Shown in pieces: positions 24,908 to 49,891 of a DNA stretch of 64,000 nt. Numbering within the stretch: position 1 is the first letter of the stretch; each line of letters starts with the position of its first letter. Under the pieces are notes generated by a model that was not told the DNA's origin, did no database searches, and was given only the letters and a program-made list of their open reading frames with translations. Made by a program: the position numbers and the translations under genes. Source of the DNA: Adineta vaga (taxonomy: Eukaryota; Animalia; Rotifera); assembly GCA_021613535.1 (NCBI GenBank), contig CP075493.1:8122001-8186000 (forward strand), in the 5' to 3' direction.

Positions 24908-27120
24908 ATGTATTACAAGAATGCATTTACTTCATTTCATGGTTTATATCTAATCTTTCTTTTCATATGTATCTTAAGTAAAAGAATCGATTTTTTTCTT
25001 ATTTAAAAGTAAATACAACTGTTATTATAGTCTTTAGCATTGTTCAAACAGCATCAGCACAATCTTGGTCGAATCATATACGAGATTTATCACCAAAAAC
25101 ATATATATCTCATTCTGACAATAACTCGATCGATCAATATCCAGTAAACGAGGAATTCATGCTACTCAGAGATAAGCATAAAAATCATCCATTGACAAAA
25201 TTCAAGTCATACAATACATCATCAACAACCTGTACAACTGTAACCAAGACGAAATCAATAACTAATATATCTTCTCCAGTTATCAATCACTCAATTGGTC
25301 ATCTTGGTAGACGATTATTGAATGAGCCAAGTTATGACACGGATCTCGATATTTCATCTCCACAAGCATTACTTCAAGATGATAATGAAATCGGAGATTT
25401 CCTTCAAGTTAACGAAGAAGATATGCACAAAGCATTTGTTACCTTCGAAATCACAACTGATGGAAGTGGTGAGAGTATGTATAAATGTATAGCAATTAAG
25501 ATCAAATGCAGTCATTTTCTTTTTTTTTTGTTCTGATTATCTAGCAACGGATTATACAACAGAATACAGTACTGGTGAGTTATCACATTCGTTTTCTTTT
25601 ACTAACATATTTTACTACGAATGTATTTGTAATAAACATTATTCCAACATTAACCACAGATACGTCTTCGACAATAACTGTATCATTTATAACAACCGAC
25701 AAATCGACAGCTTTAACTACGTTTCAAACATCTTCGGGTGCGATTACAACAACAGTCAAAGTACCTGAAAACATAGGTGAATCTTTGGTATAACATGACT
25801 GAGATGATAATTATAAATTTTCTTTTAGTTCTTTCAAATATAACTACATTTGAAATCAATGTCAACTGTATAGATCCCAACACTACATTAATAAACGTAT
25901 TACTTTGTTAAAATACTTTTCTGTTGTACAATTTTCTTCAATTCAGATAATAACTCAATTTAATGTATATTTCTACTATACCTATAATGTGTCATATCAA
26001 ATTTCAAATACACCAAAGTATGTAGAAACAAATACAGATAATGTGAACTAGTTTTTTTTCATTCAGTTGCCCGAAGTCGTCGACAGCGAAAGCAACATTA
26101 ACATTTTATACCAGTAATAATACAACAATATTGAATGATCTTTACAGAATTCTGAAAAATATAACAGGATACATGAACATTGACTTGTATAGTATCAATC
26201 TATGTGGATATAATATTGAACCAAGTAAGTAACAAAATATTACAGTTCCTTAAGTATGTGTTTTGTAGTTGAATATGGAAGATGTAGCTCTTGTACCAGT
26301 ATACTAGATTAAGTTCTCTTATTTAGTCTTGGTAACGAATGTAACATCCTGTTTTCTTATCGATCAATGTAGTTTATGTGGTAGAAATAAATCACGTGGA
26401 ACCTGTGATCCAAAACAAAATTTAAGTAAATGTCGATGTTATATAAATGATGATGATCCGACAAGACCGTATGAGGGTGATCTTTGCGCCGAACCAGGTC
26501 CAACAACGATCAAACCTACTGCTTCAATATCTCGTTGGATTCCAATTGTTGTTGGTATTCTAGCTGGTTTAACTGCTCTGTTTTGTATAATTACAAGTTA
26601 TCTTTTGATTATGGCAATTTCACATCGTCGACATCGTTCTCGAGAACGAGTCATTCATAGTTCGTAAGTTTCAATGCATCTTATAAATTGTTTCGACTAC
26701 TTTACTTGAAATAGAGCACAAAAACAATTTAACGGTTCATGGTATTTACCACGAGCTCGAATACCAACATCCGTAACTGCAGAAAACGTTTATAATTACT
26801 TGCAAAATGATGTTTCTACGTCGAGTATTCATCGAACAAATTCTAATCATACAGAATTTAATTCAATGGATGATAAATTTTTGCAAAGACTTGATCAACA
26901 AATAAATCCACAATCAAATACAACAACATCGGAATCCATGCATAGTATTAGGGCATATAATATAGAGTCCGATACTATATCATCATTGCATAGTTATGAT
27001 CCTATCTATGAACTTGATGCCATTATCGATAGTGGAAATTTGCACATGGATTTTCATGATTCATCAAATGAGCTCTATAGAAACATTAGAGAACATGAAG
27101 TGATCTATTCATATCTTTAA
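24908..27120 (+). CDS. Type I membrane glycoprotein A (signal peptide, DGSG site, short S/T stalk, SEA-like, EGF-like, TM, Tyr-motif tail)
   Basis: ATG 24908 plus exon from 25031 give signal peptide ...LIFLFICILIFSIVQTASA. Also TDGSGE, EGF-like QCSLC...GTC...KCRC...YEGDLC, TM WIPIVVGILAGL..., and tail WYLPRARIPT...YDPIYELDAIID...VIYSYL*. Confidence 0.75.
25210..25612 (+). repeat. About 400-bp near-identical block shared with gene B (partner about 29167-29573)
   Basis: The exon end, intron, 30-nt micro-exon and start of the next intron match almost base for base between the two genes. Confidence 0.9.
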
Positions 27121-28800
27121 CAAATCAGACGGCATGTTAATAGTTGAATATTTTCTTATCATATACTTGTGTATAGTTTTGTTTTCTCTAATATTAGAAT
27201 TAATTCTTATACTGTGTATTTTGTTGAATTAAATGATATTGACAATTGATACATACTAAGAGATAAGTAGAATCGCCATTGGAAGAATAATGGTGCGGTC
27301 ATGAATCGACCAATATGGACGCGCTTCTTCATACAAAATCATTTGAGAGAAGATACACAATCGTGTACTTACAATCGTTTTCATAGTTTGTTGTTAAAAG
27401 GTAATGCAATCACTTGTTTTGATCAATTGTACTCATCGACGAAAGTATAAAAATGCTGACAAAGAATCGTGCCTAGCTTTTGCTCGTTCGCTAACTCTAA
27501 TCTCTATATATAATTCATTGTCGAGCTTTTGCAGCATACGTAGATACTACTTCATTTCATTATCCGAAGATGAAAGATATCAAATTTCCTTTCTTGTCAC
27601 ACATGACATCAGATGAATAGGATCAGAAATCTAAAATAATTCTCATACAGCGAAAGAAGTGATGTTTTTTTTTCATTATAATGGAATCAACTTTCTATGT
27701 GCACATATCGTTATTTTGAAATATCATGACTAATTTAATATTTTTCTCTCGACTTCTGCTAAATGAATTCTACCTGATTGCATCAATAAATACTCAAATG
27801 AAAAAATATTTGAATAAGAAAAACCGTTGAATTTATTAAAAAAATCTTTTCTTTTCGACTATCTCCCATTCAAATAACATCAATTGACAGCATAATCAAG
27901 ATCGACGACGTCTCATGTATATATCCTTCGAGCTTCTGCTAATGTCGTTGATATTGATGTTGAAGATATCGTATTACGGCAAGGAAAAGGACAGGTAGAA
28001 AAAAATGGTATCGATTTCGTAATCAATTAAACTACCTACGCATCATTTCAGATGACTTCAGCAGTTTTCGAGCATAATTAAGTAGGCGATTATGAAGCAA
28101 TTTATGTATAGAAACATGAAATTTTCTTGCAAATTATGCAATAAACATTCATTTCAACATTTAGAAGCTTAATCACACAGAAAGTAAATAGTTACACTAC
28201 AGAAAACGAAAAAGAAAAAGAATTTTTCGCACGACTGTGTGTAATTGGATATCTGTTGTTAAAGAGATTATGCTAAAAAAGACGTTTGGAGGTGGAAATG
28301 CATAAGAAGATCTCCTAGTTGTGAAAGAACGAAAAGAAAAAGAGAAAATAATATATTTAATTTTCTCTTTTGATTATTCATGATAAAATATAACTTGTCA
28401 TTCGAAGAGTTGACTTGAATATTTGTCTACCAGTAGCGATTCTTTCAGAGCAATCGATTCATTTTCTTAGCTACACATCTATCTTCTGATGTCTTTCAAA
28501 ATCTAGTTTTCTGTTCGTTTGTAGTAAAGTGCAAATCTTTCTTTTTATTTGCGAGAATATTTTTTTATTTTTCTCTTCATAACGAAATAAATATTATTAG
28601 TAATAACGTAGATATAGGATAGATGATAATCCTACTCTCAAACATCTGAATATATTTTTTACTGATATAGTTTATCAACCTTGTCAATTTACTTAATCGA
28701 AAACAGAAGTTTTCAAAATAAAGAGTATTTATCGAAATAAACTACGTCCATTCGATATTCTAAATTACTCTAGAACAAAGGTATTGTGGATTGATTTCCA

Positions 28801-28821
28801 TATATATATATATATATATAT
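28801..28821 (+). repeat. (TA)n microsatellite
   Basis: (TA)10 just upstream of the gene B start. Confidence 0.9.
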
Positions 28822-28863
28822 CAATACAGTATATTTATTCAATTGCACCAACAATATTTAGAA

Positions 28864-31522
28864 ATGTTTATTACATATCTCTTAGGTAATTTATATATAA
28901 CTTTGTAAGTTTTACAAATAATTCATACTATTTTAGTCTTCAAATCAATCGCGACCATATCTGGTGAATTAACTGCTACGCAAACATTATCGAGTGAAAT
29001 TCAAGACTTGTCATCGAATAAACATAACTCACAGTTGAAAAGTAAAATTATTGAAACTCATCCATTCGACGAAGGCTTCATACTTCTTTCTGCAAATCAT
29101 GATAAACCGTTAGCAAGCGAACAAAAATCGAATATATCGCTAAGACATCCTCCAAGTTCTACAGTATATAACACATCATCAACAACCTGTATAACTGTAA
29201 CCAAGACGAAATCAATAACTAATATATCTTCTCCAATTATTAATCACTCAATTGGTCATCTTGGTAGACGATTATTGAATGAGCCAAGTTATGATACGGA
29301 TCTCGATATTTCCTCTCCACAAGCATTACTTCAAGATGATAATGAAATCGGAGATTTCCTTCAGGTTAACGAAGAAGATATGCACAAAGCATTTGTTACC
29401 TTCGAAGTCACAGCTGATGGAAGTGGTGAGAGTATGTATAAATAAATGTATAGTGATTAAGATCAAATACAGTCATTTTCTTTCTTTTTTGTTCTGATTA
29501 TCTAGCAACGGATTATACAACAGAATACAGTACTGGTGAGTTATCACATTCGTTTTCTTTTACTAACATATTTGAAAAAGATGGTAAAAGTAAATGTGAA
29601 ATGTAAAGAGATGTCGTTATTGATCTAGTTGATTCTATCTATGTAAAGCTTACGAGTATTCTCCTGATAATATGATTTAGAAGTAGCATCGACATCAATA
29701 GAAATAACAGCAACGCAGACGACATCATCTGCAACAATTTCTTTGATCACCACAACAATTACCCAAGCAGATACAACCGAAGCAATTACAGATATTCCGG
29801 AAATAACAACGATTAAAACACCAGATACTGCTGCACCTACTACATTATTAACTGAGGCAGCAACTACGGATGCATCTACTACTATATTGACGGATGTCTT
29901 AAGCACAAGTATAGATACAACGATCTCCGAAGTACCAACTACGAGTGTATCTGAAACTACAGTCGTTACAGGAATAACCACCGATGCCACTTCGATAATA
30001 ACTACTTCAATTACAACAATCGATAAATCGACAGTCTCATTTACGTTTCAAACATCCTCACAGTTAACTACAACAACAACGACAATTACCATACCTGATG
30101 ACATAAGTAGATCTTTTATAAATTATCTATAAACAAATAATCACAGGTTCTCTTTTAGTTCTACCAAATAAAACGACATTTTATATCAAATTCAACTGTA
30201 CAAATGCTAATGATACACTAATGGATGTATGTATTTTGTTAGAATACTTCTGCAACGTAGAATAATTTTTATTTTTAGATATTGGCAGATCTGAAAAATC
30301 CTTTGTATGAAATTATGTATACTTATGACAAACCATTGCCGTAAGTAGACCAATATGTTGTCACAAAAAAAATTTAGCTTCATAAAATTTCAGATGCTCC
30401 GAATCTGAAAAAGTTACTGCTACGTTGATTGTACAAACTCCAGATAGTAATGTTACAACATTGAACAATTTATATGAAACCTTAGAAAATTTAACTAGAC
30501 ATCGAGGCTTGGAATTGCTTATTGTTAACAGATGTGGTAGAGGTGATAGTATAGGTAAATCATTATTTTGTAGAAAATTGAAAAGAAAGTCTTCCTCTTC
30601 AAAATAAATATTATGTTTTCTTCTGTAGATGTGGTGAAGAATACAACATCATGTTATCTCATAGATCAATGTGGATTATGTGGGATAGATCCAGTACGTG
30701 GTATATGCGATCCGAAGAACAGAACAGTCAAATGTCGATGTTTTACCAATGATCAAGATCTATCAGCACCGTATGAGGGTGATTTTTGTTCAATACCAAG
30801 TCCTAAACCCATAAAATCGACGTTCTCACCATCCCGTTGGACACCTATTATTGTCGGTGTTTTAGCTGGTTTAGCTGCTCTATTTTGTGCGATAACATGC
30901 TGTCTTTGGTTAGTAGCTGCCTGGCGCCGTCGACATCATAATGCACAGTAAATTATTCTTAATAACAAATTGATTCCATTTTCTTTTCTCTTTATCTTTC
31001 AATAGAGATGAACTACTTATTCGTCGTATATGGCATTTACCACGAGCTGAAGTTCCAACGACTGTAACAGCTGAAAATGTTCCAACGTATTTAGGAACAA
31101 CTAATTCAACCATAAGTACTCAAGGAACAGATTCTGTTCATACAAGAGGTAGTACTACGAATAGTACATTTTTCAAAGAATTAGATCAAAAGATGGGTGA
31201 AAAATTACGTGCAACAATCACAAGACCAAATACGAGTGGTATGCTAGCAAGTTTACCTTCTGATACAGCATCAACATTGAGCAGTTATGATCCTATTGAT
31301 GAACTTGATGCTATTATTGATAATGAAGATATGAATGCTACATTTCATGATCCATTAGATGAACTCTATGAAGATAATGAAATGCTTGAAGTAATGAATC
31401 CAAATTTGAAATTACCAAGACCTAATGTTGACTCCAAACCAACTGGTCTATTTTCGGTAAAGATCGCTAATTGAGTTATTAACATTTAAATTTTCGTTTC
31501 TTTTCCTTTTTAGTTTTTCTAA
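28864..31522 (+). CDS. Type I membrane glycoprotein B (paralogue of A with Thr-rich mucin stalk)
   Basis: MFITYLL|VFKSIATISG signal, ADGSGE, Thr-rich exon at about 29681-30106, EGF-like QCGLC...GIC...KCRC...YEGDFC, TM WTPIIVGVLAGL..., tail WHLPRAEVPT...YDPIDELDAIID...NPNLKLPRP, and terminal micro-exon 31514-31522 (FF*). Confidence 0.8.
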
Positions 31523-33069
31523 ACAAGGTTTCCATTCATCTATTTTATTCAGTGCTGGTCGCTTTTTATCATTTATTTTCTGGTGATTATGATGTCTATA
31601 TTTTTTTGTTTCAATGATCCTATCCCAATCTATATTCATATTCTTGTGTCGCTTCGTCTATTTCTGTGAACCTTGATGTTTTTGGTCACAATAAATTTCC
31701 AATTCTTTTCAATAATTTACTGATCAAAAATAACAAAAGAATTCACCATATTTCAATAGTAAAAATTAATATGTTTATTACATCTAGAAGAAAAATCCAA
31801 TTTTCTCACGGGTTTTCACGTGAATTCTACCGCAAATACAAACATAAATAAACAATTAGGAGTAGTTCAGTAAAACTGAATGAAAAGAATCGCAATTATT
31901 TCACACCCTACATTTATGTAGTGAGTTTAAGGCTAATGTTCGAGTATCATAAATCAGGCGTTTTCAGACGAACGAAAAAAACCTCTGTTTCATTGCAACT
32001 TTATTATGCATGATTTTCATCATTTTTTCTTTCGAAATCATATTCATCAGTAATGTTTTTATCCTGAATTGAAGTAAAATAGTGAGTCATTTATAATCAG
32101 CAGAGACGTAAACAATAGTTCGAATGTTTTCTAAGACAGTTAGTTGTTAGTACAACAATACATTATGAATGCATTATTGTTTCAAAGTTTAATACTGATG
32201 ATTGTTTTTTCTTCTCTTTTATTCCATGAAAGAATCAGTACATGAGTATTCAGCGAAATATTCCAGTACATATCTCTCGAGACCACTTTTTTTTATTGAA
32301 ATTCCAAAATTTTTTTCGATGTGTTTTTTCACTTAAATGTTTGATCGATCGATGTTTTCTTTTCGTAGACACTTTTACATTGTATCGTAAAATAAGATGA
32401 AGACACGTAAAATTACAAGTGTGAAAAAAATTGTTATCGAAAATATTTTTCTGAAAAATCCAAAACGGATCTCTATCCTAATGAAATATTTCGTCGTTCT
32501 ATTCCAAATTGTTAATAGTTAAAAAAAAAGAAATTCTATTTGACATATATAATTATGTAAATTATGCATAATTATTCAATTTTCCTTTTCATTATTTCAT
32601 GTGAAAACTATATCCTTATTCGTAAAGAATCCTTTCTTTTTCAGTAAATTCAATTTTACCCGTTGGCGACATTTGATGTCGCATGCCAAAAAAACACAGC
32701 AAGAAAAATTGTTTTTAATGTATCCTGCAGTAGGCACTTGAAAATAATGAAACCTACAGAGTTCTATTCAAATCGAAACTTCTTATAGACAATAGATAGT
32801 TTATCATTGTTTTCATTCTAAACTTTGATCAGATTCTTATGAAGGTCAAATTATTCGACTATCATCGTTCATAGTTAATATACAATTTCATGTAATGTTA
32901 CAATAGATTATTCTTGTCAAAAATGTATACTTTGTACTTTGTCAATTTCATCTCATGTTACTATTCGATATGTGTACATGTATAATTTAGTTCTAGACGA
33001 AAGCAAGATATGAAAATGTCTTGAAGAAATCGAATTTTTTTCCTTTACATTAATATTGTTATTTTTGTA

Positions 33070-33091
33070 GTTGTTGTTGTTGTTGTTGTTG
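33070..33091 (+). repeat. (GTT)n microsatellite
   Basis: 7 units. Confidence 0.9.
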
Positions 33092-33668
33092 ATCTTGAAT
33101 GTATTCATTTGGAATCATTTGTGTTGATTAGGTTTTTTTTCTCATTCGCTTCCTGCAATGGACCGTTTTATTTTTCGTCGTAGAAAAATTTCGTTTTAAC
33201 GACAAGAATCACAAGAAAAAACGTTTTATAATGATTCGTATGTACTTTTGACGTATTACTTGTAAATGTTTATTAAAATGATGCAAGCAAAAACAATCGA
33301 TGCTGATCGGTAGTTATGTGCGACTGATTCACACTTTTCTTTACATACAGATTGGATTAGGTGAAAACATCTCAATGGTTTGATTTACTGTGTCGCATTC
33401 ACTCTCCACGATCGTGCCGTTTGAGGCATTAGAGGTGCTCAAGGTTATAGCGTGACTGTACATTGATTTCATATTCATGAAGATTTCATCTAGAGAGTTT
33501 GGACAGAAATAAAAAAATGAAGAATTCAATTATTGATCATTGAAAAATCTATTTTGTAATTTCAAAATATTTTCTTTGTTTTCATTAAAATGCGTTCGTA
33601 AATTGTATTGAATGAATAAAGTTCCATAACAATTCTTTTCTTATGTCTTATTATGCAAATTAAAGTTT

Positions 33669-33705
33669 TTCTTCTTCTTCTTCTTCTTCTTCTTCTTCTT
33701 CTTCT
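33669..33705 (+). repeat. (TTC)n microsatellite
   Basis: About 12 perfect units. Confidence 0.95.
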
Positions 33706-34979
33706 CCAATGAACTTGTCAACAATTTAACGTAAATTCAAACGTACTGAAAGACAAGTACATGTAATAAAAGTTGAAGAACAGAAGAAAAGAGTGATCGA
33801 TGATTGTTCAATCGACTTTGAAAGACTGCGAGAGAGAGAGAGAATAACTAAATAATCTTCAGTACTTTTTTGACTTCTCTTTTGCTCCGATAATGATGTT
33901 CAATACAGGGAAAGAGTTGAAATTAGGCTTCCATCAAAAAAAAGTATTTATATATTCAAAACATGATGAAAACTACTAAATAAACTTTCAGTATGCCTGT
34001 TCGTTCATTAGACGTCGTTTGATATATTTCGAAAGAAAAAAAAACGAGAATGTACTTAACGTAAAGAACCATTCATTTTATTATTTTAATTTCTATTCTT
34101 TGGCATGATTTTTCATTGAAAAACTTATTTTAAATTGTCTTAGTCATTCAATGTTTTGTTGTATTAAGAAATGAAAATAGAAATTTAGTCAATTTATCAA
34201 TAACAAACTATGGATACAAAAATTGTTCTTTATAAATCATATGACTAAATCGAAATTATAGTTATTATATACGGCTTGTTTGAAGTGAAGTATAAAAAAC
34301 AACATATTAGTAAGTTTTACTTTTGTATCAATGTAAGTGTCAAGAGATGCCATGTCTGTCTTTCTCTCTCTCACTTGCCTATTCTCATACTTTCTTCTGC
34401 TCTCTCTCTCTCTCTCTCTGTTTCCTTCGCTCCTTCCCCCTCTATAAAACATTTATTCGAGGATCATATATTGAAGAGGAAGAGATGCATGCATTCGTTT
34501 ATTTGAATAGTAGAACAAGTTTTCTAGAAGCTTATTTGACTTAAAACTGCATAAACATTACAATGAGGAACAACTTAAATGTGTAGGTGTTATAGTCTCC
34601 ATACACACACTTCTTTCATTCAAAATCAAAACTATGTTCTTGTGTACAAATCAGTAAGACAAGAGTAACATTATTCACTGAATGACGAAATTTTTTCCTT
34701 CGTCTTTTTTTCTCTTTCAACTTCATTTCACCAGTCATTTCATGGATTCAGGTTCTGTTTACTTGCGCTCTCCCCTCTCTCTCTCTCTCTCTTTTTCTCT
34801 CGTTCGATTCTCTTCCTTTTTCTTTTCTGTTCATTTTCGTATTGTTCTTTTGATTTCTTTCAAAATTTTCCTTCTAGCAAACATACAGAGAACTCATTTT
34901 CGTTTTTTTTCTTCTTTGACGATCATCAAATCGTTTTTCTCATACATAATCGTCATTTGTTTTAGATAGTTGTCAGATC

Positions 34980-37900
34980 ATGAACGTACAAAATACAATA
35001 CGACTGTTATCAGTCGCATATCTCATATCTTTAATGGCGATTACATCCGTTTTAAGTACTGATACAGGTAAAACAAAGTTTAGTATTTTATAAGTATAGA
35101 GGTATACAATAAGAGGTTATAAACTTTTCAAATTACATACATATATGATTATATACACAAAGAACTCAAGCTTACTTTCACAGCAGTTCTATTGATGATA
35201 AATTGTATGAATAAAGTCATCTAAAAACGTAATACAAATCTATCAGTAGTAGACATATATTTTCGTAGTAAAATCCTCAGATAAATTGATGTCGTTTTTT
35301 TCGTCAAATCAAAGAAAAACAATGAATTAACTTTTGATATAATACTAATGCAAATCATAAGTATTTATGTATATATCTGTCTCATGTTACATAGGATCTA
35401 ATACGAAACGGAATGATTGGCTAAATATGTATAATCAACAGCTTTACTCAGATTTATCGGGAACAATACAAGAATTAACATCGAATGATGATAACGATGA
35501 TATGGATACACGTTTTCAACCACCATTGGATAAGGATAATCAAAACTTGCCACCAATTGTTGAAGGTTATCGTTTAGCAAATACGGAAGTTATTGGTCCA
35601 GCATTATCAGTATTAATTAACAGTGAAACATCTTATGGTCGTCATAAACGTGATACTCTTTTGGATAATTCATCTATATCATCTCGCTCATTACAACCGA
35701 TCTTATCGAATAAATTGTCTAACGATGATGATGATGATACATTGTTCAATAATGCTAATGCTTGGGCGCTTAGCTTATCTTTAGTTTCATCAGCTGTTGA
35801 TGGTAGTGGAAGCGAATTTGACAGTAAGTTATACTATTACTTATCAGTTTCAAGTAAAATCAACTTCTCATATCGTATTTGTTTTACTCGAATAAAACTC
35901 GGAGAATTATCGATTATTATGTCTTATTAAATGAAAATCTTCGTCTTTCACTTGAAAACGAAAGAAATTCTTCAACCCTTTATGTAGTAAAGTACAATAC
36001 AAACATTGTTCGATGACATTGATCTGACTAAAAGACTTTCAAGGAAAGGTATTATTTTTTTTTGTTTGATTATTTTAGCGACATCCGAGACAGCGATAAC
36101 AGATGTTACATCAGCTAGCACAATTATTCAATTGACGACAATTAATCCCACCGAACAATCAACTCTCTATTCTGTCACAAATAATATGTCAGAAACAGTT
36201 ACTAATGCGTCAATTACAACAACATCATCGGAAGGTACAGAGACAGTTCGTGGTGAGTTCTCGTCCTTAAATCATGCGTTAAACTAATTTATTTTTAATA
36301 TGATACTAAGTGGAAAATATTTACAGAGTGAAAACATCTTGTTCATTTCATTCTTTTTTTCATAGACACTACATTCATCAGTGAAACACAAATATCTACT
36401 ACAACTGTAACAAATCCTACAGTTTCATCTGGAACTATTACAAATAGTCAAACTGACACCAGTGAAATCGTTTCAACTGTATCAACTAGTGATGAACAAT
36501 CAACTTCAGAACGTAAGAAAGTTTTTTTTTGCGATAGTTTCATTTAACATTATCTTTAACAAAAAAAATAGTAACGAATGCATCATCAACTCAAAGTTCG
36601 ATGACAACAGCATCGTTCTCTGATACCAGCTCTGCACAAATAATCACTGAATTATCGACAGAAATAACTGAAGTCACAGGTAATCTTCTATATTGTGGAT
36701 ATTGAAAATAGATGAATAAAGTTATTATTAACCTGTTCCTTTTTTCTTACATTATTTTAGAAGCGATATCTGAAACAGAATCAACTATTGCACCAACTAC
36801 AAATGTCGGAGAAACAGGAATAACATCAGCATCTGTATTGACAATTACTACGACTCAAACTACCGATTATATTTCGCTATCAAGTGAAGTTACGTCTGAA
36901 ATTTCTTCTACCACTCCACCGACTTCACTATCATCTTCATTCAGTTCTGAAAATACAACAGAAATTCTAACGACTACTGACGAAACTGAAATTCTTTCAA
37001 CATTATCATCTCAGACGAACATTGAAACTAGTAGTTCAACTCAATCAACAATGACAACAAGTTATATTGAAACATCGACTCAAAATTTACAACAAGCAAT
37101 AACAAACTTCTTTCTCTATTTTACACCTTTATCACGTAGTTCACGTAAAGCTCGATCAATTCCTATCAGTTCTCCACAATCATCTACTATTGAAAATGAA
37201 GTATGCTATCTTTTTTTTTGAAATAGTATTTCTATATTTATACTCATCTAATTGGCAACTTATTTCTTATAGGTATCAAAAATTCTGTATGGAATGAATA
37301 TCACGTGCAATGATACGTGTATTCAAGTAAATCAAACTAGGTAATTTCTCAGAGATTTTCATACGATTTTCTATAATAATTTTGTATTTGATTACTATAG
37401 TGTCAGTCCACCTGATGTCGAATATATGATTACATTAAATGCATCACTCACTATTGCACAACGTATAGAATTAGTAAACGGTCTTCTCATGAACAATGTT
37501 AGTTTAAATGATAGTTATCAGTTGATTGTAAGAATAATAATGAATCCAACTACTTCAGACATTTGTAAGTTTTCACCTTTAGTATTTCTCGAAGGTTAAC
37601 AAAAGTACTCGATTGTTTTCTTTTGTAGTGAATTTCACATATGTAACACCAGCTTGTAAAGAATGTGAATATGCTTTTACAGGAAATTGTACCAGTGATA
37701 ATAATTCATGTGTATGTTATCCCAATTATCAAGGACAGTTTTGTCGCGATCTTGCTCAATTAACAACGGGCAGTTTATCAACTACAATCAGTAGTACTAC
37801 TTCAACGTCGACTACATCGTCATCATCGACTACTACTACTACCACTACTATAATCACCTCGACAGTAACATTAGAGGTTACTACAGAATCAATTACTACC

Positions 37901-40900
37901 GATTTGCATACATCTCAAACAGAAACATCTTTTCAAGGAACGTTGCAAGATATTACAACAGAAGCAGTAAATACTACGAGCGTACCATCCAGTGGAACTC
38001 AGACAACAACATCAGAAATAAACTCAACACAAAGTGCAACACTAGCAGTTACTACGGAAACAGAAGAAACTACGTTATCATCATCATTACAAACGATAGA
38101 ATCAACAGGTTTTACTACAGTGACATCACATATCAGTGATACAAGCACTTCGAATTTGACTACAAGTACTTTATCAACAGTAGACACAGGAACAACAAAT
38201 GATATTACTACATTTCCAAATCCTACTACCAGCTCTAACGTAACATCAGTTGAAGCAACAACAGAAGCAAATATTATGTCTTCAACAGCCACTATTCAAA
38301 CGACAAACTCGATAACTTCTCAAACAGGTGCCACTGACGTTACAAGTATGTATGATTCAACTATTTCAACGGCAACGAAAGTAACTGCAACTACGAGCGA
38401 AACAGCTACGATAACAGACTACACAGACGTAACAATTTTACCGATTACAGTTGCAAATAGTTCAACAACAGAAACCTCTCAATTTACTACAATCATAATT
38501 GGTACAACAGTACCATCTGAAACTATAACATCCATTCTTCGACATCTACAATGATGAATGAAACAACGGAAGAAACCGCAACAGTACACTTGCCAACCTC
38601 AAGAATCACTACAGCAGCAACAGGGGATACATCGACAATGACTATTCCCACAGGTATAACTAGTTCCGTCAACACAACAACAATTGTTGGAACATCAGTA
38701 ACAGAGACAGATGCGTTTTCCACAGCATCTTCTACTTCAGGTTCAACTAGTGCTCCATATACGAATACGATTATTGGAACAACAACAACATTAACAGAAA
38801 CAAGTGAAACGCATACATCTGTCAGCAATTCGGCTGCAACTAGTTCAAGTAATACAGTGACAACGGAGTCTTCGACTTCCAACAGTTCGTCTATTATACC
38901 CACGACGTCAGGAGAATATTCTACATCCTCCACTACGTCGAGTACTACTAATTTCAACAACACCGCTACATCCGTAGGAATTTCACTCACAGACATATCT
39001 TCAACATCAACCAGCACCTTTTACACAAGCAGTGTAACTGAAACAACCGCAACAAATTCGACCAGTACAACTACAATCACCCAAACGTAACATCAAGACC
39101 ACCTACTATTTCGGATTCTACTACTCAGACTGGTTCAACAACAACTAGTGGAACCGGTACATCAGCTTCATCTTCGATTACAGGTGTATCCAGTTCACTC
39201 AACACAGCTACAGTAACTGGAGCCGCAACATCAGGACCAGCCACTATTTCGGATTCTACTACTCAGACTGGTTCCACAACAACAACTACTGGAACCGGTA
39301 CATCACCTTCATCTTCGATTACAGGTGTATCCAGTTCGATCAACACAGCTACAGTAACTGGAGCCGCAACATCAGGACCAGCTACTACTCCGGATTCTAC
39401 TACTCAGACTAGCTCCACAACAACAACTACTGGGACCGGTGTATCATCCACAGTAACACACGATACATCAGCATCACCTTCGATTACAGGTGTATCCAGT
39501 TCGATCAACACGGCTGCAGTTACTGGAGCTGCAACATCAGGACCAGCTACTGTTTCGGATTCTACTACTCAGACTAGCTCCACAACAGCAACTACTGGGA
39601 CCGGTACATCACCTTCATCTTCGATTACAGGTGTATCCAGTTCGATCAACACGGCTGCAGTTACTGGAGCTGCAACATCAGGACCAGCTACTGTTTCGGA
39701 TTCTACTACTCAGACTAGCTCCACAACAACAACTACTGGGACCGGTACATCAGCCACAGTAACACACGATACATCAGCATCACCTTCGATTACAGGTGTA
39801 TCCAGTTCGATCAACACGGCTGCAGTTACTGGAGCTGCAACATCAGGACCAGCTACTGTTTCGGATTCTACTACTCAGACTAGCTCCACAACAGCAACTA
39901 CTGGGACCAGTGTATCATCCACAGTAACACACGATACATCAGCTTCATCTTCGATTACAGGTGTATCCAGTTCGATCAACACAGCTACAGTAACTGGAGC
40001 CGCAACATCAGGACCAGCTACTATTTCGGATTCTACTACTCAGACTGGTTCTACAACAACAGCTACTGTAACCGGTGTATCAGCCACAGTAACACACGAT
40101 ACATCAGCATCACCTTCGATTACAGGTGTATCCAGTTCACTCAACACAGCTACAGTAACTGGAGCCGCAACATCAGGACCAGCTACTATTTCAGATTCTA
40201 CTACTCAGACTGGTTCAACAACAACTACTGGAACCGGTACATCAGCATCATCTTCGATTACAGGTGTATCCAGTTCGATCAACACAGCTACAGTAACTGG
40301 AGCCGCAACATCAGGACCAGCTACTATTTCAGATTCTACTACTCAGACCAGTTCCACAACAACTATTGGAACCGGTACATCAGCATCATCTTCGATTACA
40401 GGTGTATCCAGTTCGATCAACACAGCTACAGTAACTGGAGCCGCAACATCAGGACCAGCTACTATTTCAGATTCTACTACTCAGACCAGTTCCACAACAA
40501 CTATTGGAACCGGTACATCAGCATCATCTTCGATTACAGGTGTATCCAGTTCACTCAACACAGCTACAGTAACTGGAGCCGCAACATCAGGACCAGCTAC
40601 TATTCCGGATTCTACTACTCACACTGGTTCCACAACAACAGCTACTGGAACCGGTGTATCTGCAACAGTAACACACGATACATCATCATCATCTTTGATT
40701 ACAGGTGTATCCAGTTCACTCAATACAGCTACAGTTACTGGAACCGGTACATCAGCATCATCTTCGATTACAGGTGTATCCAGTTCAATCAACACAGCTA
40801 CAGTAACTGGAGCCGCAACATCAGGACCAGCTACTATTCCGGATTCTACTACTCACACTGGTTCCACAACAACAGCTACTGGAACCGGTGTATCGGCAAC

Positions 40901-43900
40901 AGTAACCCAGGATACATCAGCTTCAATACCAAGTGTATCCAGTTCAACTAACACGACTACAATCACTGGAACAATGCCATCAATAACCGCTACTATTTCT
41001 GGTTCAACTAGCACAGCAAATCCAACATCAATCATAGGAATTAGCGCAACAGTACCAGTAACACACGAAACGTCAGCATCAAATTCAGAAACAAGTGTTT
41101 CCAGTTCAACAAGCACAATCACAGCCACCGGAATCGTCCCGTCAGCAACTTCTGACTCTATTACTTCGGGCCAGTCCTACAACAATGAGTGACACCACTG
41201 GAACAGCAGCAACACAAACCATCGCAGGTGCCGTTAGTTCAACGAGTACAACTGGAACGATTGGATCGACATCATCAACAATAACTGCTACTTCGGGTTC
41301 ACCTAATCCAATAGTTAGCACATTAATGACTGGATCAGCTGCAACGGTAACACATGAAACGTCAACATCTGGAGTCACCACAAGTGTAACTAGTTCTTTG
41401 AATACAGCTTCAGCTACTGCAACCGTATCATCAGCCACATCTGCTAATTCGACCGCTATTAATCCAGTGAGTATAACAACAATCGCTAGAACCAACGCAA
41501 CAGCAACACACGACACATCGGCCTCGACTTCGAGCACAGGTGTAACTAGTTCGCTTAATACAGCTGCAGTTACTGGAACGGTGCCATCAGTAACATCCAC
41601 TACTTCAGGCGCTACCAGTAGTTCGACTAATCCAGTATCAATTACCGAAGGAATTTCGACAGCATCGGAAGCTATCACAAGTGGAACTAGCACATTAAGT
41701 ACAGCTGCTGTCACCGGAACAGTGCCATCAGTAACATCCACTACTTCAGGCGCTACTATTAGTTCGACTAATCCAGTATCAATTACCGAAGGAATTTCGA
41801 CAGCATCGGAAGCTATCACAAGTGGAACTAGCACATTGAGTACAGATGCTGTCACCGGAACAGTGCCATCAGTAACATCCACTACTGCAGGCGCTACTGT
41901 TGCAATTAGTACAACAACCGTCACAGGAACAGTGCCAATGTCCTCGAGTGAATCTTCAATCTCAGGTTCTACTAGTTCAGTCACTGGCGTTACTATTACG
42001 GGAACAATAGGAACGGTGACACTTGTTACTTCGAGTACAGACAGTTTGATCAATTCAACGACAATTACGGAAACAACTACTTCGATGAACACAACTTCAA
42101 TCACACCTACGAATTCAGATTCAACCGGCTCTGCAGATACATCTTCTCATACTGGAACAGAGGCAACATTGACTGTTGAATCTTCTACATTAACAGGTGC
42201 TCTGAATACAACTGGGTCTGTTAGTACAAGTGGTACGATAACCGATCAATCTTCAATTTCGACTACTCTAATTACAATTACAGAAACAATACCATCGGTA
42301 ACAAATGCTACTGCGAACTCTACTATTCCGACTAGTACAGTTACGGTGACAGAAGCAGCAACGACATTGACTGGAACTTTCCACACTGATCAATCTTCAA
42401 CTTTGTCCGCTACTGCTAGTTTAACGAATACAACTTCAAGCACAGGAATAGTACCAACGATGACATCTGAATCTTTGACATTGGTGGTGACCGCGGATAC
42501 GACTAGTTCTAGCAACGCAACTATGTCATCTGGTATCTCAGTTACGACTGTTTCGAGTAATACAACGGTACATATTAGTACAGCAGCAATTGTGACTGAT
42601 GGTGCTTCTACAACAGGAAGTTCAATTAATTTGACTGTTACAACACAAATACCAACCATTGAAATCTCAACGATTTCGGGAACCAACACATCAGTTCCCG
42701 AAACATCTACTTCATCGATAGGAACTGATACGACTATGTCAAGTAGCACCGCAGCACCAATAACAACTAGCACAACACAACTTTCGACGACAACGACAAC
42801 GATAACAACAACAACAAGTTCATCTACAACGACGGTTACTACCACAACAACAACAATTACTGTAACTGCTATTACGCAAAGTAACAAGCTTATTTATCGA
42901 TTTTGTCAACTAGTATTATTTATCTCATCTCTTTCTAGACTGTATATGGTCAAATTGGATTCCACTTACTAATTGTACGCCTTCCTGCGGTATAGCATAT
43001 CGACAATTGAGTCGATCGTGTATTGACTCTATTTCTGGTCAAAGTTGTAATACTAACGATTGTAGTAGTGGTAATGCTACACAAAATGAATTATGTACTA
43101 CCTCTCCACCTTGTGAAAGTAAGTTATACTATTTATCAATTCAGACTCATTGAACATTCTCTTTATTTCTCTTTCCCTTAATCATATATAGCGCTTACTG
43201 TTACACTATTGCCAAATACACGTGATCCAAACTTACGAATTTCTTCTTATGTATTACCAGATGCAATGTATTTTTTTGAAGAAACTTATCGTCGTATTTG
43301 GGTATGACTATTATTACTTCTTTTACTTTGATTTACATAAAAAGATCATATCTGTTCATTTGATAGATTACAAATAAAGGTTATATTACTTTCGATACAC
43401 CTTATTATGGTCAAACAATGACTCGATCGACTTTTCCACAACTTTCTAACCAAGCAGTTGCAGCTCCATTTTGGACTAATTTAACTTATGATTATGTAAG
43501 TTTAATCACATTATCTTCTTTTTGCAAACTTTAATCACCATATATTTATAGACAAATTCAAATATAACAATTAATTGGTTTAATTCAATTAATGCTAGTC
43601 AAAGTGAAATAAATGCTTATTATCCTATTATTCAACAAACGATAAGTGAAGCATGTCCAACACAATCTTGTTCATTGAACCTAGCAGCAAGTCGAGCTGT
43701 TCGAATCGAATGGAAAAATCTCACCTATCAATTACCAGATAATAATCAATTTATAGTAATTAGTTTTTCATTGATCACGTCTTCTATTAAAGCTTTTCTT
43801 TTAGAATGTCACATTTGCTGCTTATTTGATTAACACCTATGATACTTCATCGTCATCATATCCAATTCTTCGATCTTATCTTGCATTTGATTATAGTAAC

Positions 43901-46900
43901 CTAATACAAAATCTCGGTTCACTTCGACCATTTGTGGGTATGTACCATCAAATATTTATATCTTAATCGATTCAAATGAATGAAAATCATTTAGGTTACC
44001 GTGGAAGATATTCTCTGTTACAAATTCTTAATGATCCATCATATAATCAAAATGCTAGATTTCTAAGTACATTTGATCAAATTATCAATTTTTTCAAGAA
44101 AAAAGAACTTTTTCGATTTCTAGGACAATCTTCACATAAAAGTTTTTATATTGGTGGTCGATTCTTAACTCAATGTGAAGTTTCCTATTTACAGGAAACA
44201 GCATTCAATGCTTTAAATCCTTCTGAAAATCTCAATGATATTGTGTATGTTACTATTCTTTTCTATTTCAGATCGAAATTTTATACTATTCGTTTGTTTA
44301 GAAACAATCCAAGATTTCCATGTCCATGTACACTTGGTCAAGCACGAGCAGATCGTCGTTTTAGTCGATTATCTAGTGAAACATTCTATGAATCGTCACA
44401 AAATGTCGTCTGTTACGGACCCATGATTCTCAATTGGGTTCGTTGGAAATCGTCTTTTAAAAATCTTCGTCCACAAGTAAAGAAATTCTTTCGAGAAATT
44501 AAAAAGAAAAATCATTATTTTCCTTTGTTAGACATGTTGCTACAAACAAAATAATGGTGGTTTATTAACATATGGTAGTTTTGCTGGTTCAGTTCTATCG
44601 AATGCGTTGAATATCTTTCAACTATTTCCTTGGCAAAGACGAATATCATTTCAGTATGTTTCATTTATTTAAATTATATCAGAAACTTATCATTCTTTTG
44701 CTTTCAGTGATCAATGTTGTTCACCAGTATTTTTTCGTGGACCATCAGTCGATAATCCTTGTCGTCTTTATTATCAAGTTCATCCAGCAAGTACTTGCAA
44801 TGGATATCAAGCAACTGAAATAGGTAAAACAAAACTTGAGTTTTCATATTTCTATTCTAATTCTGGGAAAATAATTTATCTTATAGTCACAAATGTTGGC
44901 GATCCGCACATCGATACTATTGATAATGGTCGTTATACATGTCATATTCAAGGTCTATTCGTATTTGCACAAACTACTGCTAATGCTAATCAAACTGCTC
45001 TATATAATTTAAATAATGTTAATGTTTCTGATACTAATTTGATCTATCCAGAAGATTTATTCTATATATACGTTCGTTCTGCTTCCATATCACCAGCATT
45101 ACCTTATGTTGAACGAATGCAAGGCTATGCATCGATATTTTCGACTTTTATCATTGGTGCTGGAAATTATACATTTACTATTAGTAATGTTAATGGGAAA
45201 TTTGGTAAGATGAATATATTGAATAAGAGAAATATTATGAATATTTGTTTCTATTCACAGGCTTTACGGCAAGTAATAATTTAGAAAATGTATCATTGAC
45301 AAATACTTTAGCTAATAATTTAAATTATGATTCAATCAATCTCACTAATTTAAATGATAGATATATGTATCGAGTAAAACAAATCAGTATATCTATTTCA
45401 AATACAACAGTTCCTCAATTAACACTTGCTCTTTGGTCTGGTCTTTCAATACAATGTCAAATTATGGTGGACAATCTAGAATGCATTGTATCGTTACCAC
45501 AAAAATATCGTACCCATATCGAAGGTTTAGCGGGTAATTTCAATGGACTTTATAGTGACGATTTAATTAATCGTCAAACGAATCAAACTGTTTCGATTTT
45601 GCCATCGGACAATCAAACAGCTGTCGTAAATGATATGGATATTCTCAATGCTTGTCTTTCATGTAAGTTTCTTCTTTTATTTGTCACACAGACTTGATTG
45701 AAGATTTGTTTGTTGCTTTTTTTTGTTACATAGGGAGAGTATCGAGTGATACAACAGCAAATATAACGAAACCAATCATGCCATCGACTTTAGTCGATTG
45801 GTATTATAATAGTGCTTCAAGTATACTTACAAGTTTGAATTCACGTCTAAATCAAAGTCAAGTCAATCAAACATGTTCATCAAGTATAGAATGTGTTCAG
45901 GATTATATCGTTCGAGTAAATCCAATTGCTAGCGGTGCAACAGCTTTACTATTAAATTCATATCGAGAAGCACGAACATTATTAGGTAAGATTTCTGTTT
46001 CTCTATTCATCTCGTTTCGATTCAATGTTCGTTCATTTCTATAGCTGAAAAGCCACCGATAATCAATGTTTCGTCAACCGTTCAAATACCGTTATCATAT
46101 AATGTAACTGATCGTAATTATTCATTACCTATAAGTATTAGTGGAGCAAGTAATACAATAGTTTCCATTTCTACAAATGGTACAGTGAATGCAAGTACTT
46201 TTCAAGGTTCATCTATCAACATTCCAATACCAAATAATACTTATACCTATGTTGATGTTTCGTAAGTGATTTTTAATTGAATAGTTTATATAATTTTTGT
46301 GTTTTTTTTATAGTCTAACAATTGTATATGGCACAAATTCGACATTAATAAACTATTTGAAAATTATCGCTTGTCTATGTATAGATAGTCTCTATTGCGA
46401 TTATGCAGAAACAACAATTTTATCTGAGAATTATGAACTTGCATCGTGTAATTGTCCTGATCAATATGATGGTATATAATAGAATGAAAAGAATTTAGAT
46501 TCATTATTGAATAACTTTCTTTGTGCTGCATAGGAATATTTTGTCAACTTTCATATGATGGTTGCAATTCGAGTAGTGCTTGTCGAATAAATTGGAATAA
46601 CGGTACTGGATGTGTTCCATTAAGTCCAACTGACCAAATGGCACAAAATCATTCGTATATTTGTAATGGAACATGTTCAAAAGGATACAGTTCACAGAAT
46701 CAATATACTTGTGAAGGTAAGAAGTCTGTCGAATGTTTAAAAGATGATTTATAGTTTATTATTTAGATGAAAATGAATGTCAAAACAATCCATTGCAATG
46801 CGGCAATGGTACATGTATTAATCTGATTGGATCATTCACATGTAATTGTACGGATGGTTATCGATTTGAAAATGATACATGTATACGTAAGTTGTTTTTG

Positions 46901-49891
46901 TTCTGATAGAAATCTTAGAATAAAAATATATATTTTTCTATCTTTGTTCACAGCGATCAACAAATGTGCAGAACCGAATATTGATGGCAGTTTCACATCT
47001 TTCTGTAATGAATCGCAAGAATGTGAATATGTAAATGGTAGTTTTACATGTGCATGTAGTCCTGTTTTTAATTCTACGGGAACTTGTGCTTGTATGTATA
47101 CTATCGTAGAATATTCTTAACTAAATATCTCTCTAAATAGATAATTCAAGTCTTTGTGTTAATGATACTTGTACTAGCAGTACTGATAACAATACCATCT
47201 CATGTTTACATGGTACCATTAAACAAAATAACAGTTGCATTCGTAAGATTAATTTTGAAAAAATAAATAGAACTATTATTCGTTTTTAGCTTGGTGTCAA
47301 TCATCATGTCCAAACTTTTGTGAACGTGTAAATGGATTTTATCAATGTAATTGTATGAAACAACCTGGATTTCAACATTCTGATGATGGCAAACAATGCT
47401 TACGTATGAATCGATTCGCTTGACAGTATGTTCTTGATGAATTATTCTTTTTCATTGTAGCATGTGGAAATTTAAATTATGGTTACGGTTGTAATGAAAC
47501 TTGTCAATGTGGTTTTGGTACTTGTAACGCTAATGCAACCAGTATTAATGAAAGTTGTACTTGTGATTCTGGATATGAACGACCACTTTGTAATAAACGA
47601 ATAGATATCTGTGGTACGAATTTGAATGCTCATTTTATATACACCCATTATTATTTCACTACGTTTCTTTTGTTTTTTAGCTACGGGCTCATATTACAAG
47701 AATGTCTAACAGATCCTAGTACTGGAAATGCTATTTTGATTTGTATGCCTGGTTATGAAATGAATTCAACAACTGGTAATTGTACAGGTAAGAATAATTA
47801 TGATGAAATACAATCTTAAGATTTATTAATATTTATGTATAGATGTGAATGAATGTGCAAATGATCAAGATCATTGTAATGTTGATGTTTCATCATGTGT
47901 GAATACAATTGGAAGTTATCGTTGTGATTGTTTAACTGGTTATCGGGTTAGAAACGAATAATTTGCATTTTTCTTTTCTTTATTGATTCATTGAATTCAC
48001 TAGTCTATTAATGGTTCTTGCGTTGATATTAATGAATGTGAAGAAAATTCATCAACTTGTTTAGTCTATGATAATACATATTGTGCAAATATTCAAGGTT
48101 CATATGAATGTCGATGTAATTACAATTATTCATTAGGAGGTATAGAAATGTTGATTATTTAATACAGTAAAACAAAGTTCTTCTGTTCTTGTTTCCATAG
48201 GAGATTATACTCAACAATTCGAAAATGCTCGTAATTCAAATCAGACATGTTTACCAATAAATTATTCTGCATATTGTCAAAATCAATGTCAAGCACCAGC
48301 AAGTTGTAGTGCAACAACAGGTCGATGTGAATGTCCATCATCAAGCTATACACTTGTTGAATATGCATTAAATCAAACTCTGGAAACATGTCAATGTCCG
48401 GGTCATCCATTTATTTATTTTAATGGATCGAGTTGTATCAATGCGACTGGTAAACAGAAGAAAACGATTTTCTTTTGATGTTAATATTAGTCTTTTATAG
48501 GTGAAACATGGTTTCTACTTGATTTTCAATTTAAATCACGTACTCGCGTTATATCTATTAATACACCAGGTTCAGTTGCGGTACAAAATGATGTATGATT
48601 CCATTATACATTTTTTCAATCTTGATTTTAATATTTGATACGTTTTTGTTTTTACAGATAACAAATATTTTATTGGATATGAATATAACATGCAATGGAT
48701 CATGTATAAAATTGTTTAATACAGAGTAAGTTGAATGAATTCATTTTCATACAAATATTGATGTAATATAATCTACTAGGGATTTAACACCTCCTGATCT
48801 TCAACTTATGGTAACATTAGATGTTATTCTCAATGTTACAGAACGAATAATATTGGTCAATCGTTTACTTAATGATAGTGTTACTTATAATGATAGTTAT
48901 ATTTTATCAATGATACGAATTATTATGAATCCATCAACAAATATCTTGAGTAAGAATGAATGAAAAAGACAAATGTTTGATTAAATGTATTGTTCTCTTC
49001 TTTCTAGTTAATATTTCAACTGTTCAACCGGCTTGTCAAGAATGTGTCTATATGGATGCAGGTGTTTGTTGGACAAATCGTAGCAGTTGTACTTGCTTTG
49101 CTGGTCATGAAGGATACCTTTGTCGACTTGCTTCTTCAACACCATCACTTTCATCTCAATCACCAGAAACAAATTGGACTGTCATTGTGGCTGTTGTTAG
49201 TGCCATTGCTGGCCTTTTATTTATCATTTCAATTGCTATGTGTGTATTCTATTGTGTTAAAAAACGGCAACCATCTGAAACAGAAATGAAAACACCAGTA
49301 CAACGTCCACAATTTGTCTTACCACGTGTTCATATTCCAACCATGGGTACTGGTAGTCGAGCTTTAAATGCTTGGGATGGTTTTAGTCTTGATAATACTT
49401 ATGATGAACAATATGTCGATGCATCCGATTCATTTCCATCAAGTTCATCGACAACGTATAATACGACTTATCATACGAATGGTCAACATCCCGAAGCCGA
49501 TTTTGGTATATTTGATGAATTAGAAAATCGTATACCCATGTCGAAAGGCCATATACCGCGACCACAAATGGTCAATATTCTTGGAACATTAAATAGTTTA
49601 CCGAGTCAAGAAAGATTTGATGAACCATCAGGAGATGAAAATACAATTTCAGATTTTCGTGATATTGATGATATTGAATTAGTCACCGATATGTTAGATG
49701 ACATGACCAAAGATGATGACGTGGACGATGAATTTGTTGAAGCCTTAAATCCAAATTTATCTATACCAAGATTAGCTCTACACCCGGAAACACAACCATC
49801 AGGATGGTTTCCAGTATGTTTAAAACAATGAAAATCTTGTTCTTCTTACATTGTCTTTCTTTTTCTATTTTAGTTCTTTCGAAATTCGTAG
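34980..49891 (+). CDS. Giant MUC4-like membrane mucin C: signal, DGSG, S/T, SEA-like+EGF, S/T tandem repeats, TSP1, NIDO, AMOP, VWD, EGF/cbEGF, SEA-like+EGF, TM, tail (three apparent frameshifts in the repeat exon)
   Basis: Signal MNVQNTIRLLSVAYLISLMAITSVLS; RHKR; VDGSGS; TSP1 WSNW...CTPSCG...RQLSRSC at about 42940; NIDO-like ITNKGIITF...AVAAPFWTNL; AMOP CPCTLGQARADRRF; VWD GDPH at 44898 and IEGLAGNFNG; cbEGF DENEC/DVNEC/DINEC; TM WTVIVAVVSAIAGLLF; last micro-exon 49874-49891 (FFRNS*). Confidence 0.85.
39089..40930 (+). repeat. Coding mucin tandem repeat, about 12 units, mostly about 138-165 nt
   Basis: Unit approximately TSGPATISDSTTQTGSTTTTGTGTSASSSITGVSSSINTATVTGAA, with an optional ..ATVTHDT insertion. 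The anchor ACATCAGGACCAG recurs throughout. Confidence 0.92.
41560..41890 (+). repeat. Second coding repeat, 141-nt unit x about 2.3
   Basis: TAAVTGTVPSVTSTTSGAT.SSTNPVSITEGISTASEAITSGTSTLS starts at 41560, 41701 and 41842. Confidence 0.9.

Follow-up and report, generated by a model that had tools for sequence, protein, structure and literature searches.

Paralogous genes for putative transmembrane mucins with a shared, lineage-restricted cytoplasmic tail in the bdelloid rotifer Adineta vaga

Three adjoining, co-oriented genes of the bdelloid rotifer Adineta vaga (A, 24908-27120; B, 28864-31522; C, 34980-49891; all on the plus strand) appear to encode paralogous type I transmembrane mucins, members of a family known to date from bdelloid rotifers alone; we put the probability of this reading at about 70%. 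The genes lie in a window of 64,000 nucleotides of low-GC eukaryotic DNA (contig CP075493.1, positions 8,122,001 to 8,186,000) from an assembly of 100.8 Mb in six contigs, and all positions below are those of the window unless another contig is named. In each gene the signal peptide is followed by a dibasic site, an acidic stretch with the motif DGSG, a phase-1 intron, a Ser/Thr stalk, a Cys-bearing domain of ~100 amino acids (aa) rich in N-glycosylation sites, a six-Cys EGF domain, a transmembrane segment opening with W-x-x-I-[IV], and a cytoplasmic tail. A first-pass annotation, made from the letters alone, had proposed three co-oriented genes with these ends, this order of elements, and membership of a single family of mucin-like, membrane-tethered proteins whose tail is common and whose stalks are unequal. 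The proposed gene boundaries hold to the base, all elements of the order were located in A, B and C, and tail homology together with the common plan supports the single family.

Gene A corresponds to I4U23_002603 (UJR15669.1, P0057; 561 aa, annotated as a hypothetical protein), which aligns exon by exon to 24908-27117 at 97-100% identity. Gene B corresponds to I4U23_002604 (P0101, 680 aa), mapping at 98-100% identity, and the 3' part of gene C to I4U23_002606 (P0127, 2263 aa). Gene C extends from its signal peptide at 34980 to a stop at 49891. These NCBI proteins were the basis for the analysis of A, B and the 3' part of C; the 5' part of C (34980-41325) was analyzed exon by exon.

The cytoplasmic tails tie the three genes together. 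Tails of A and B align at E 7e-32 and those of B and C at E 9e-10, collinear across the whole tail. A hidden Markov model (HMM) built from 17 C-type tails only recovers all six B-type tails at 19.6-32.7 bits, against 6.4 bits for the best of 1600 shuffled tails; this control rules out a chance or low-complexity origin of the likeness. The collinear motifs [LI]PR..PT, an acidic block, NPNLx[LI]PR and G[WL]F-FF are all present in B and C, which also share a phase-0 intron placed exactly before the terminal micro-exon that starts with FF, and the tails end in FF or FFRNS. The tail of C, ~210 aa long, carries three [LI]PR motifs (at 49319, 49553 and 49763) and NPNL at 49748-49759. The idea of a tail common to all three genes stands for the significant A-B and B-C pairs, but A keeps only the proximal two-thirds: its distal third (NPNLx[LI]PR...G[LW]F-FF) is missing, as it is from the A. 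ricciae orthologue of A. Two A-type tails score no higher than the shuffles with the C-type HMM, and A is therefore linked to C only through B.

A search of 1.84 billion representative proteins with a tail-only profile returned 46 matches, 38 of them at E ≤1e-10. All named matches are uncharacterized proteins from Rotaria, Adineta or Didymodactylos, and the remainder are unnamed metagenome fragments; no Pfam family and no characterized protein was matched among these representatives, and a feature search of the ESM Atlas starting from the C tail brought up no usable match. Two outcomes had been named beforehand as speaking against the family—a C tail unlike the A and B tails, and a tail belonging to a characterized family. 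Neither was found, since the tail profile reaches no characterized family and the C-tail HMM finds the B-type tails. Five copies of the tail exist in the genome: those of A, B and C, and two more on contig C4. Over ~170 residues the C tail of the window is 46-78% identical to the other aligned C-type tails, other bdelloid genera included, and it is predicted to be disordered, with a single short helix in the AlphaFold2 model (predicted template-modelling score, pTM, 0.12). The combination of conservation and predicted disorder suggests a string of short binding motifs. C-type heads and tails also occur together in small bdelloid proteins such as the 450-aa P0052. In Rotaria sp. Silwood2, the proteins P0052, P0045, P0085 and P0092 (446-1034 aa) have a C-type tail that stops early at NPN[VI]IIPR, joined in P0052 to a C-type head, and the family therefore has further size variants in other bdelloids.

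The N-terminal heads share motifs and their order. DGSG shows no variation among the A/B-type and C-type heads examined, those of two ohnologous genes on contig C4 described below included (B', related to A and B, and C', related to C), and it stands in heads that are otherwise poorly conserved. The dibasic site reads GRRLL in A and B and RHKR in C; it is kept as a furin-type R-x-K-R in the C orthologues and as RRNRR in B', and it shows no conservation in the Rotaria B-type proteins. In A and B the codons for DGSGE are immediately followed by a phase-1 GT-AG intron; in C such an intron lies four codons further on, after DGSGSEFD. Pfam returns nothing meaningful on either heads or tails. The heads of A and B are nearly identical because of a 404-bp tract (25209-25612 in A, 29166-29573 in B) that shows 95.6% DNA identity in blastn, intron and micro-exon included, whereas outside the tract the two genes are 66-70% identical. 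The tract is probably the product of gene conversion.

The same invariance of DGSG amid poorly conserved heads bears on another reading, possible although on balance unlikely, in which A, B and C are mainly cell-surface proteoglycans. DGSG after an acidic stretch would then be a xylosyltransferase site for glycosaminoglycan, and the proteins would act as syndecan-like co-receptors instead of, or besides, mucins. The acidic-G-S-G-acidic context fits the published xylosyltransferase consensus. Syndecans and other part-time proteoglycans are also type I membrane proteins in which a Ser-Gly site in acidic context lies close to the N-terminus; they too have a dibasic or protease-sensitive site, and their paralogues share a conserved tail. 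However, the proteins described here have only one such site each and, unlike syndecans, carry mucin stalks and EGF and SEA-like modules. Pfam finds no syndecan match on family members, and the tail has no similarity to the C1-V-C2 regions of syndecans and does not end in EFYA. DGSG could equally be an S-x-E kinase site or a structural turn. When all six frames of the genome were searched for the C-terminal domain of xylosyltransferase (Xylo_C), nothing was found, but the control was likewise empty, which makes the search uninformative.

Beyond the shared plan, gene C has an ectodomain of MUC4 type. The series TSP1-NIDO-AMOP-VWD-EGF had been claimed for it, and of these domains AMOP, VWD and calcium-binding EGF pass the Pfam cut-offs, the last (EGF_CA, PF07645) at 34-47 bits per exon and 68 bits for three together; AMOP also reaches 27.7 bits in the Rotaria orthologue. 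The VWD domain starts with GDPH, the autocleavage motif of MUC4-type VWD domains (PMC8660890), and GDPH is found in 12 of the 12 C-type orthologues that span the region. The assignment of a MUC4-type core, AMOP-VWD(GDPH)-EGF, is thus upheld. Stalk lengths are ~50 aa in A, ~150 aa in B and ~330 plus ~1700 aa in C, in line with the ~50, ~150 and over 2000 aa given previously. Within the larger stalk of C, repeat units of 138-306 bp are arrayed in tandem at 39089-40824, and units of 141 bp at 41555-41898. Elsewhere in the genome, at least ten other AMOP-domain exons on contigs C1-C5 score 41.6-61.3 bits, better than the intron-split AMOP of C, and AMOP-bearing genes are numerous in A. vaga.

The juxtamembrane domain precedes an EGF in all three genes. 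In an AlphaFold2 model of the A module, built from 13 aligned family members, the mean predicted local distance difference test score (pLDDT) is 63.5 and the core reaches 70-88; the predicted order is strand-helix-strand-strand-helix-strand (beta-alpha-beta-beta-alpha-beta), the topology of SEA and ferredoxin-like domains, and the EGF after it is poorly modelled. By predicted sites the domain, ~100 aa in length, is heavily N-glycosylated. The nearest named language-model clusters for the B module are the SEA-containing mucin-12 and mucin-13, at scores of 0.77-0.78, which we treat as a lead only. When the module profile was compared with PDB sequences, the EGF part alone was picked up, matching Notch EGFs at E 0.003. 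Gene C contains the module twice, at 37273-37744 between the two mucin stretches and at 48500-49123 before the transmembrane segment; one of these copies had been overlooked in the earlier annotation.

The recommended comparison with collinear bdelloid copies was informative on the origin of the cluster. A region of contig C4 is collinear with the window on both flanks, forming a syntenic, ohnologous block that holds B' and C'. B', the ohnologue of A and B (C4 ~4443100-4457900, minus strand), has an A/B-type head with RRNRR and DGSG, a Ser/Thr exon of 2009 codons, a TSP1-like region, NIDO, AMOP, VWD (GGDPH), EGFs, a SEA-like domain, a further EGF, a transmembrane segment and a B-type tail; its cassette is only 33-46% identical to that of C. 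C', the ohnologue of C (C4 ~4422050-4438800, minus strand), opens with a C-type head, continues with a pair of complete TSP1-NIDO-AMOP-VWD-EGF-SEA-like cassettes (GDPH is present in both, and they are 47-71% identical to the cassette of C) and ends with the transmembrane segment and tail. Giant MUC4-like members therefore exist for both types of head and tail. Tandem MUC4-like ancestors probably predate the bdelloid genome duplication, and A and B would have descended from them by loss of the cassette and of the long mucin exon, because the C4 ohnologue of A and B is a giant MUC4-like gene with an A/B-type head and tail. The description of the cluster as a graded series is accurate in that stalk lengths differ widely, but the series looks like the product of domain loss, the ohnologue of A and B being itself a giant.

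Several results weigh against the family as outlined. C-type and A/B-type heads resemble each other mainly in the succession W-x-N ... DL ... EG[FY]xL, dibasic site, acidic run and DGSG. Their sequence similarity is weak (blastp E 0.024; hhalign E 0.002 at a probability of 13%), and a pairwise blastp comparison between the heads of C and B was not significant; the proposal of a shared head accordingly stands mainly on the motif order common to A, B and C. The C module is likewise not significantly similar to the B module in pairwise blastp. Pfam SEA (PF01390) has no match at E up to 1-5 on the modules of A, B, C or Rotaria. Searches with the A module (Foldseek against the PDB, VIA-align wide and an atlas search) returned generic ferredoxin-like folds only, the SEA-bearing part of Gpr126 being one among many fold matches (Z 7.5). 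The SEA autocleavage motif G|SVVV is absent from the module alignment, and the nearest candidate, NGSCI in C-type modules, is unconserved. Because Pfam SEA never matches, G|SVVV is absent and the fold matches are generic, we use the label SEA-like only: by predicted topology and by position the domain resembles SEA, and it is not taken for a member of the SEA family. The two remaining domains claimed for C fare less well than the others, TSP1 falling below the Pfam threshold and NIDO (PF06119) having no Pfam match on the C protein itself (P0127:575-830), with one of seven aligned orthologues matching at E 4e-6. Short B-type genes occur in Rotaria as well, which bears on whether A and B lost sequence or B' gained it; the trimming of A and B, if real, is therefore old. 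Finally, the mucin exon of C is not one open frame as assembled: across 37583-42969 the Ser/Thr-rich frame runs f1, f0, f2, f0.

The frame switches lie near 38535, 39085 and 41170 (within 38521-38554, 39042-39090 and 41062-41192). The sequence at the switches resembles continuing coding, at least two of the three fall at short homopolymers, and two flank the tandem-repeat array at 39089-40824. An exhaustive search for GT-AG introns across the three switches yielded chance combinations only, all within coding-like sequence and none resembling the other introns of the gene, whose donors read GTAAGT or GTATGT and whose T-rich acceptors end in TAG. We regard indel errors of the long-read assembly as the likeliest cause, and the fault in C is probably one of annotation or assembly. 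It is unlikely, though it deserves to be weighed, that C is not one functional gene in this strain and that the frame changes are real, leaving a truncated secreted N-terminal mucin (stop at 38552-38554) and a headless 3' remnant. Three switches with no canonical AT-rich intron bridging any of them would fit such a break, as would the NCBI model I4U23_002606, which begins at an internal Met (41326) within the mucin exon; and since the mucin exon of B', in the same assembly, is unbroken over 2009 codons, long mucin exons can assemble cleanly. However, each of the three breaks falls within or next to the 5 kb richest in repeats, which are 85-97% identical, and at least two fall at homopolymers, a pattern typical of long-read indels. 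Downstream of the breaks, ~7 kb with more than 20 exons continue without a stop and match the annotated protein at 95-100%. The orthologues of C are moreover single genes in Rotaria magnacalcarata (P0037, 2786 aa), R. sordida (3512 aa) and A. ricciae (3542 aa), with the same head (the exon at 35361-35826 in C) and the same tail.

Domain content, motifs, conservation and paralogy are observed; the behavior of the proteins can be outlined by analogy with MUC4 and the SEA mucins. As transmembrane mucins, A, B and C would be O-glycosylated proteins of the apical surface, together forming a glycocalyx of uneven height. Autocleavage at GD|PH would divide C, B' and C' into a membrane subunit and a mucin subunit that would stay bound to it non-covalently and could be shed. 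A furin-type protease may cut at RHKR or the dibasic site, removing or loosening the N-terminal head of ~100 aa, and DGSG may bear a glycosaminoglycan. The common tail might serve in sorting, export from the endoplasmic reticulum (ER) or cortical anchoring through partner proteins. Glycosylation, cleavage, localization and any signalling of A, B and C are, by their nature as analogies, expectations of this kind.

The conserved GDPH and dibasic sites would also suit a picture in which membrane anchoring is transient. After cleavage at both sites, the mucin subunits would be released as extracellular material of a structural or adhesive kind, such as a surface coat, a pedal-gland secretion or an egg envelope, and the tail would serve precursor trafficking only; the C-terminal di-phenylalanine does resemble ER-export signals. 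We consider this quite improbable: A and B have no GDPH and a short stalk and nonetheless keep the tail, and the conserved stretch of C-type tail, which extends to other genera, is longer than a trafficking signal needs. Tethered mucins with a retained tail remain the preferred reading. The first-pass annotation went further and inferred receptors that signal or anchor through the tail, possibly at the integument or gut surface; for signalling we find no support, the tail being predicted disordered and without a Pfam domain. Yeast transmembrane mucins Msb2 and Hkr1 act as osmosensors, and a comparable role of the disordered tail, as a bdelloid-specific signalling or anchoring module that transmits the mechanical condition or hydration of a mucin coat of several heights into the cell, strikes us as very improbable; if true, it would make the cluster part of a surface sense of drying in these desiccation-tolerant animals.

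Comparison with known proteins places the cluster within a familiar class. MUC4 and 'mucin-4-like' proteins, among the closest known systems, share the domain plan of C: signal peptide, huge tandem-repeat Ser/Thr domain, NIDO-like region, AMOP, VWD with GDPH, EGFs and a single transmembrane segment. Unlike MUC4, C has a TSP1-like repeat before the NIDO region (itself sub-threshold), around ten EGFs instead of three, two SEA-like+EGF modules, one of them an addition before the transmembrane segment, a conserved head with a furin site and DGSG, and a conserved, unrelated tail of ~210 aa, compared with ~22 aa in MUC4. The SEA-type membrane mucins, including MUC13 and MUC1, resemble A, B and C in their tandem co-oriented genes, stalk rich in proline, threonine and serine (PTS), juxtamembrane alpha/beta domain, EGF, transmembrane segment and conserved tail; by contrast, A, B and C have no Pfam SEA, no G|SVVV and no class I PDZ ending, and their tail is unrelated and much longer. 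CD34, podocalyxin and endoglycan likewise form a small paralogous family with a mucin stalk, a Cys-containing globular juxtamembrane domain, a transmembrane segment and a conserved tail, but no sequence or domain relationship to them was detected and the likeness is one of analogy only. In genome organization the closest parallel is the human 7q22 cluster of MUC3A, MUC3B, MUC12 and MUC17, a tandem set of membrane mucins with common C-terminal modules and PTS lengths that differ widely (PMC9578598).

The statement that the cluster matches no described system was therefore overstated, the ectodomain plan being that of known transmembrane mucins (MUC4 type and SEA-EGF-TM type, TM denoting the transmembrane segment). 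The cluster is a lineage-specific version of a well-known protein class and not a new kind of system. The novelty lies in how the elements are combined: SEA-like+EGF modules accompany a MUC4-type core, the head is conserved and holds a dibasic site and DGSG, and short and giant paralogues have in common a long, lineage-restricted, disordered tail. A search of the literature on bdelloid mucins found nothing relevant. SEA-type membrane mucins are stated to have arisen in vertebrates (PMC9578598), and among animals with a Muc4-like protein Lang and colleagues, as cited in PMC4948705, reported Xenopus to branch deepest. Against that background, well-supported examples from invertebrates are an addition. 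Cnidarian MUC4-like proteins may carry an added SEA domain near the membrane, and descent of MUC4 from a SEA-containing ancestor has been discussed (PMC9080433). The presence of a MUC4-type AMOP-VWD(GDPH) core together with a SEA-like+EGF module in a spiralian lineage bears on that idea.

The results supply names and a domain map (Table 1) for bdelloid proteins listed as 'hypothetical' or 'EGF-like domain-containing', and they flag a likely annotation or assembly fault in C. With a common head and tail and stalks of such different reach, giant ohnologues included, the genes offer a natural series for the role of mucin length at the cell surface. The conserved, disordered and lineage-restricted tail provides a handle for seeking its partners.

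Table 1. Features of genes A, B and C in the window; SEA-like denotes the juxtamembrane domain and its internal counterpart in C.
Gene	Feature	Position	Strand	Remark
A	Head exon	GRRLL 25306-25320; DGSG 25459-25470	+	
A	Micro-exon	25547-25573	+	
A	Ser/Thr stalk, ~50 aa	25653-25775	+	
A	SEA-like domain exons	~25830-26225	+	Fold prediction
A	EGF and transmembrane exon	26326-26664 (transmembrane 26536-26619)	+	
A	Tail exon, without the distal NPNL/FF part	26716-27120	+	
B	Head exon	28930-29433 (GRRLL 29263-29277; DGSG 29416-29427)	+	
B	Ser/Thr stalk, ~150 aa	29671-30105	+	
B	SEA-like exons	~30155-30553	+	
B	EGF and transmembrane exon	30622-30948 (transmembrane 30838-30924)	+	
B	Tail exon	31004-31456 (NPNL 31397-31408)	+	Against C tail, E 9e-10
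B	Terminal FF micro-exon	31514-31522	+	
C	Signal-peptide exon	34980-35057	+	
C	Head exon, then phase-1 intron	35361-35826 (furin-type RHKR 35640-35651; DGSG 35799-35810)	+	
C	First Ser/Thr stalk (PTS1), ~330 aa, several exons	36080-37100	+	Stop-free Ser/Thr-rich segments
C	Internal SEA-like and EGF	37273-37744 (six-Cys EGF 37655-37744)	+	Frame continues into the large mucin exon
C	Main mucin stalk (PTS2), ~1700 aa	37745-42882	+	46-59% Ser+Thr
C	TSP1-like repeat, WxxW...CxxxCG pattern	42938-43120	+	PF00090, 13.6-14.3 bits (cut-off 21.6)
C	NIDO-like region	43194-43939	+	41-64% identity with orthologues
C	AMOP domain	44303-44822	+	PF03782, 32.0 bits (cut-off 25; P0127:790-1010)
C	VWD domain	44898-45661 (GDPH 44898-44909)	+	PF00094, 25.7-27.2 bits (cut-off 22.9)
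C	~Ten EGF-like domains	46312-48454	+	Three calcium-binding (~46766-46885, 47842-47949, 48025-48132)
C	Juxtamembrane SEA-like and EGF	48500-49123 (SEA-like 48500-48948; EGF 49034-49123)	+	
C	Transmembrane segment, tail and terminal FFRNS micro-exon	49175-49891 (49175-49258; 49259-49813; 49874-49891)	+	

Just upstream of A, on the minus strand, exons resembling an asparagine-synthetase domain (SGGIDS, LGADEQ) were identified by eye at 21872-23175.

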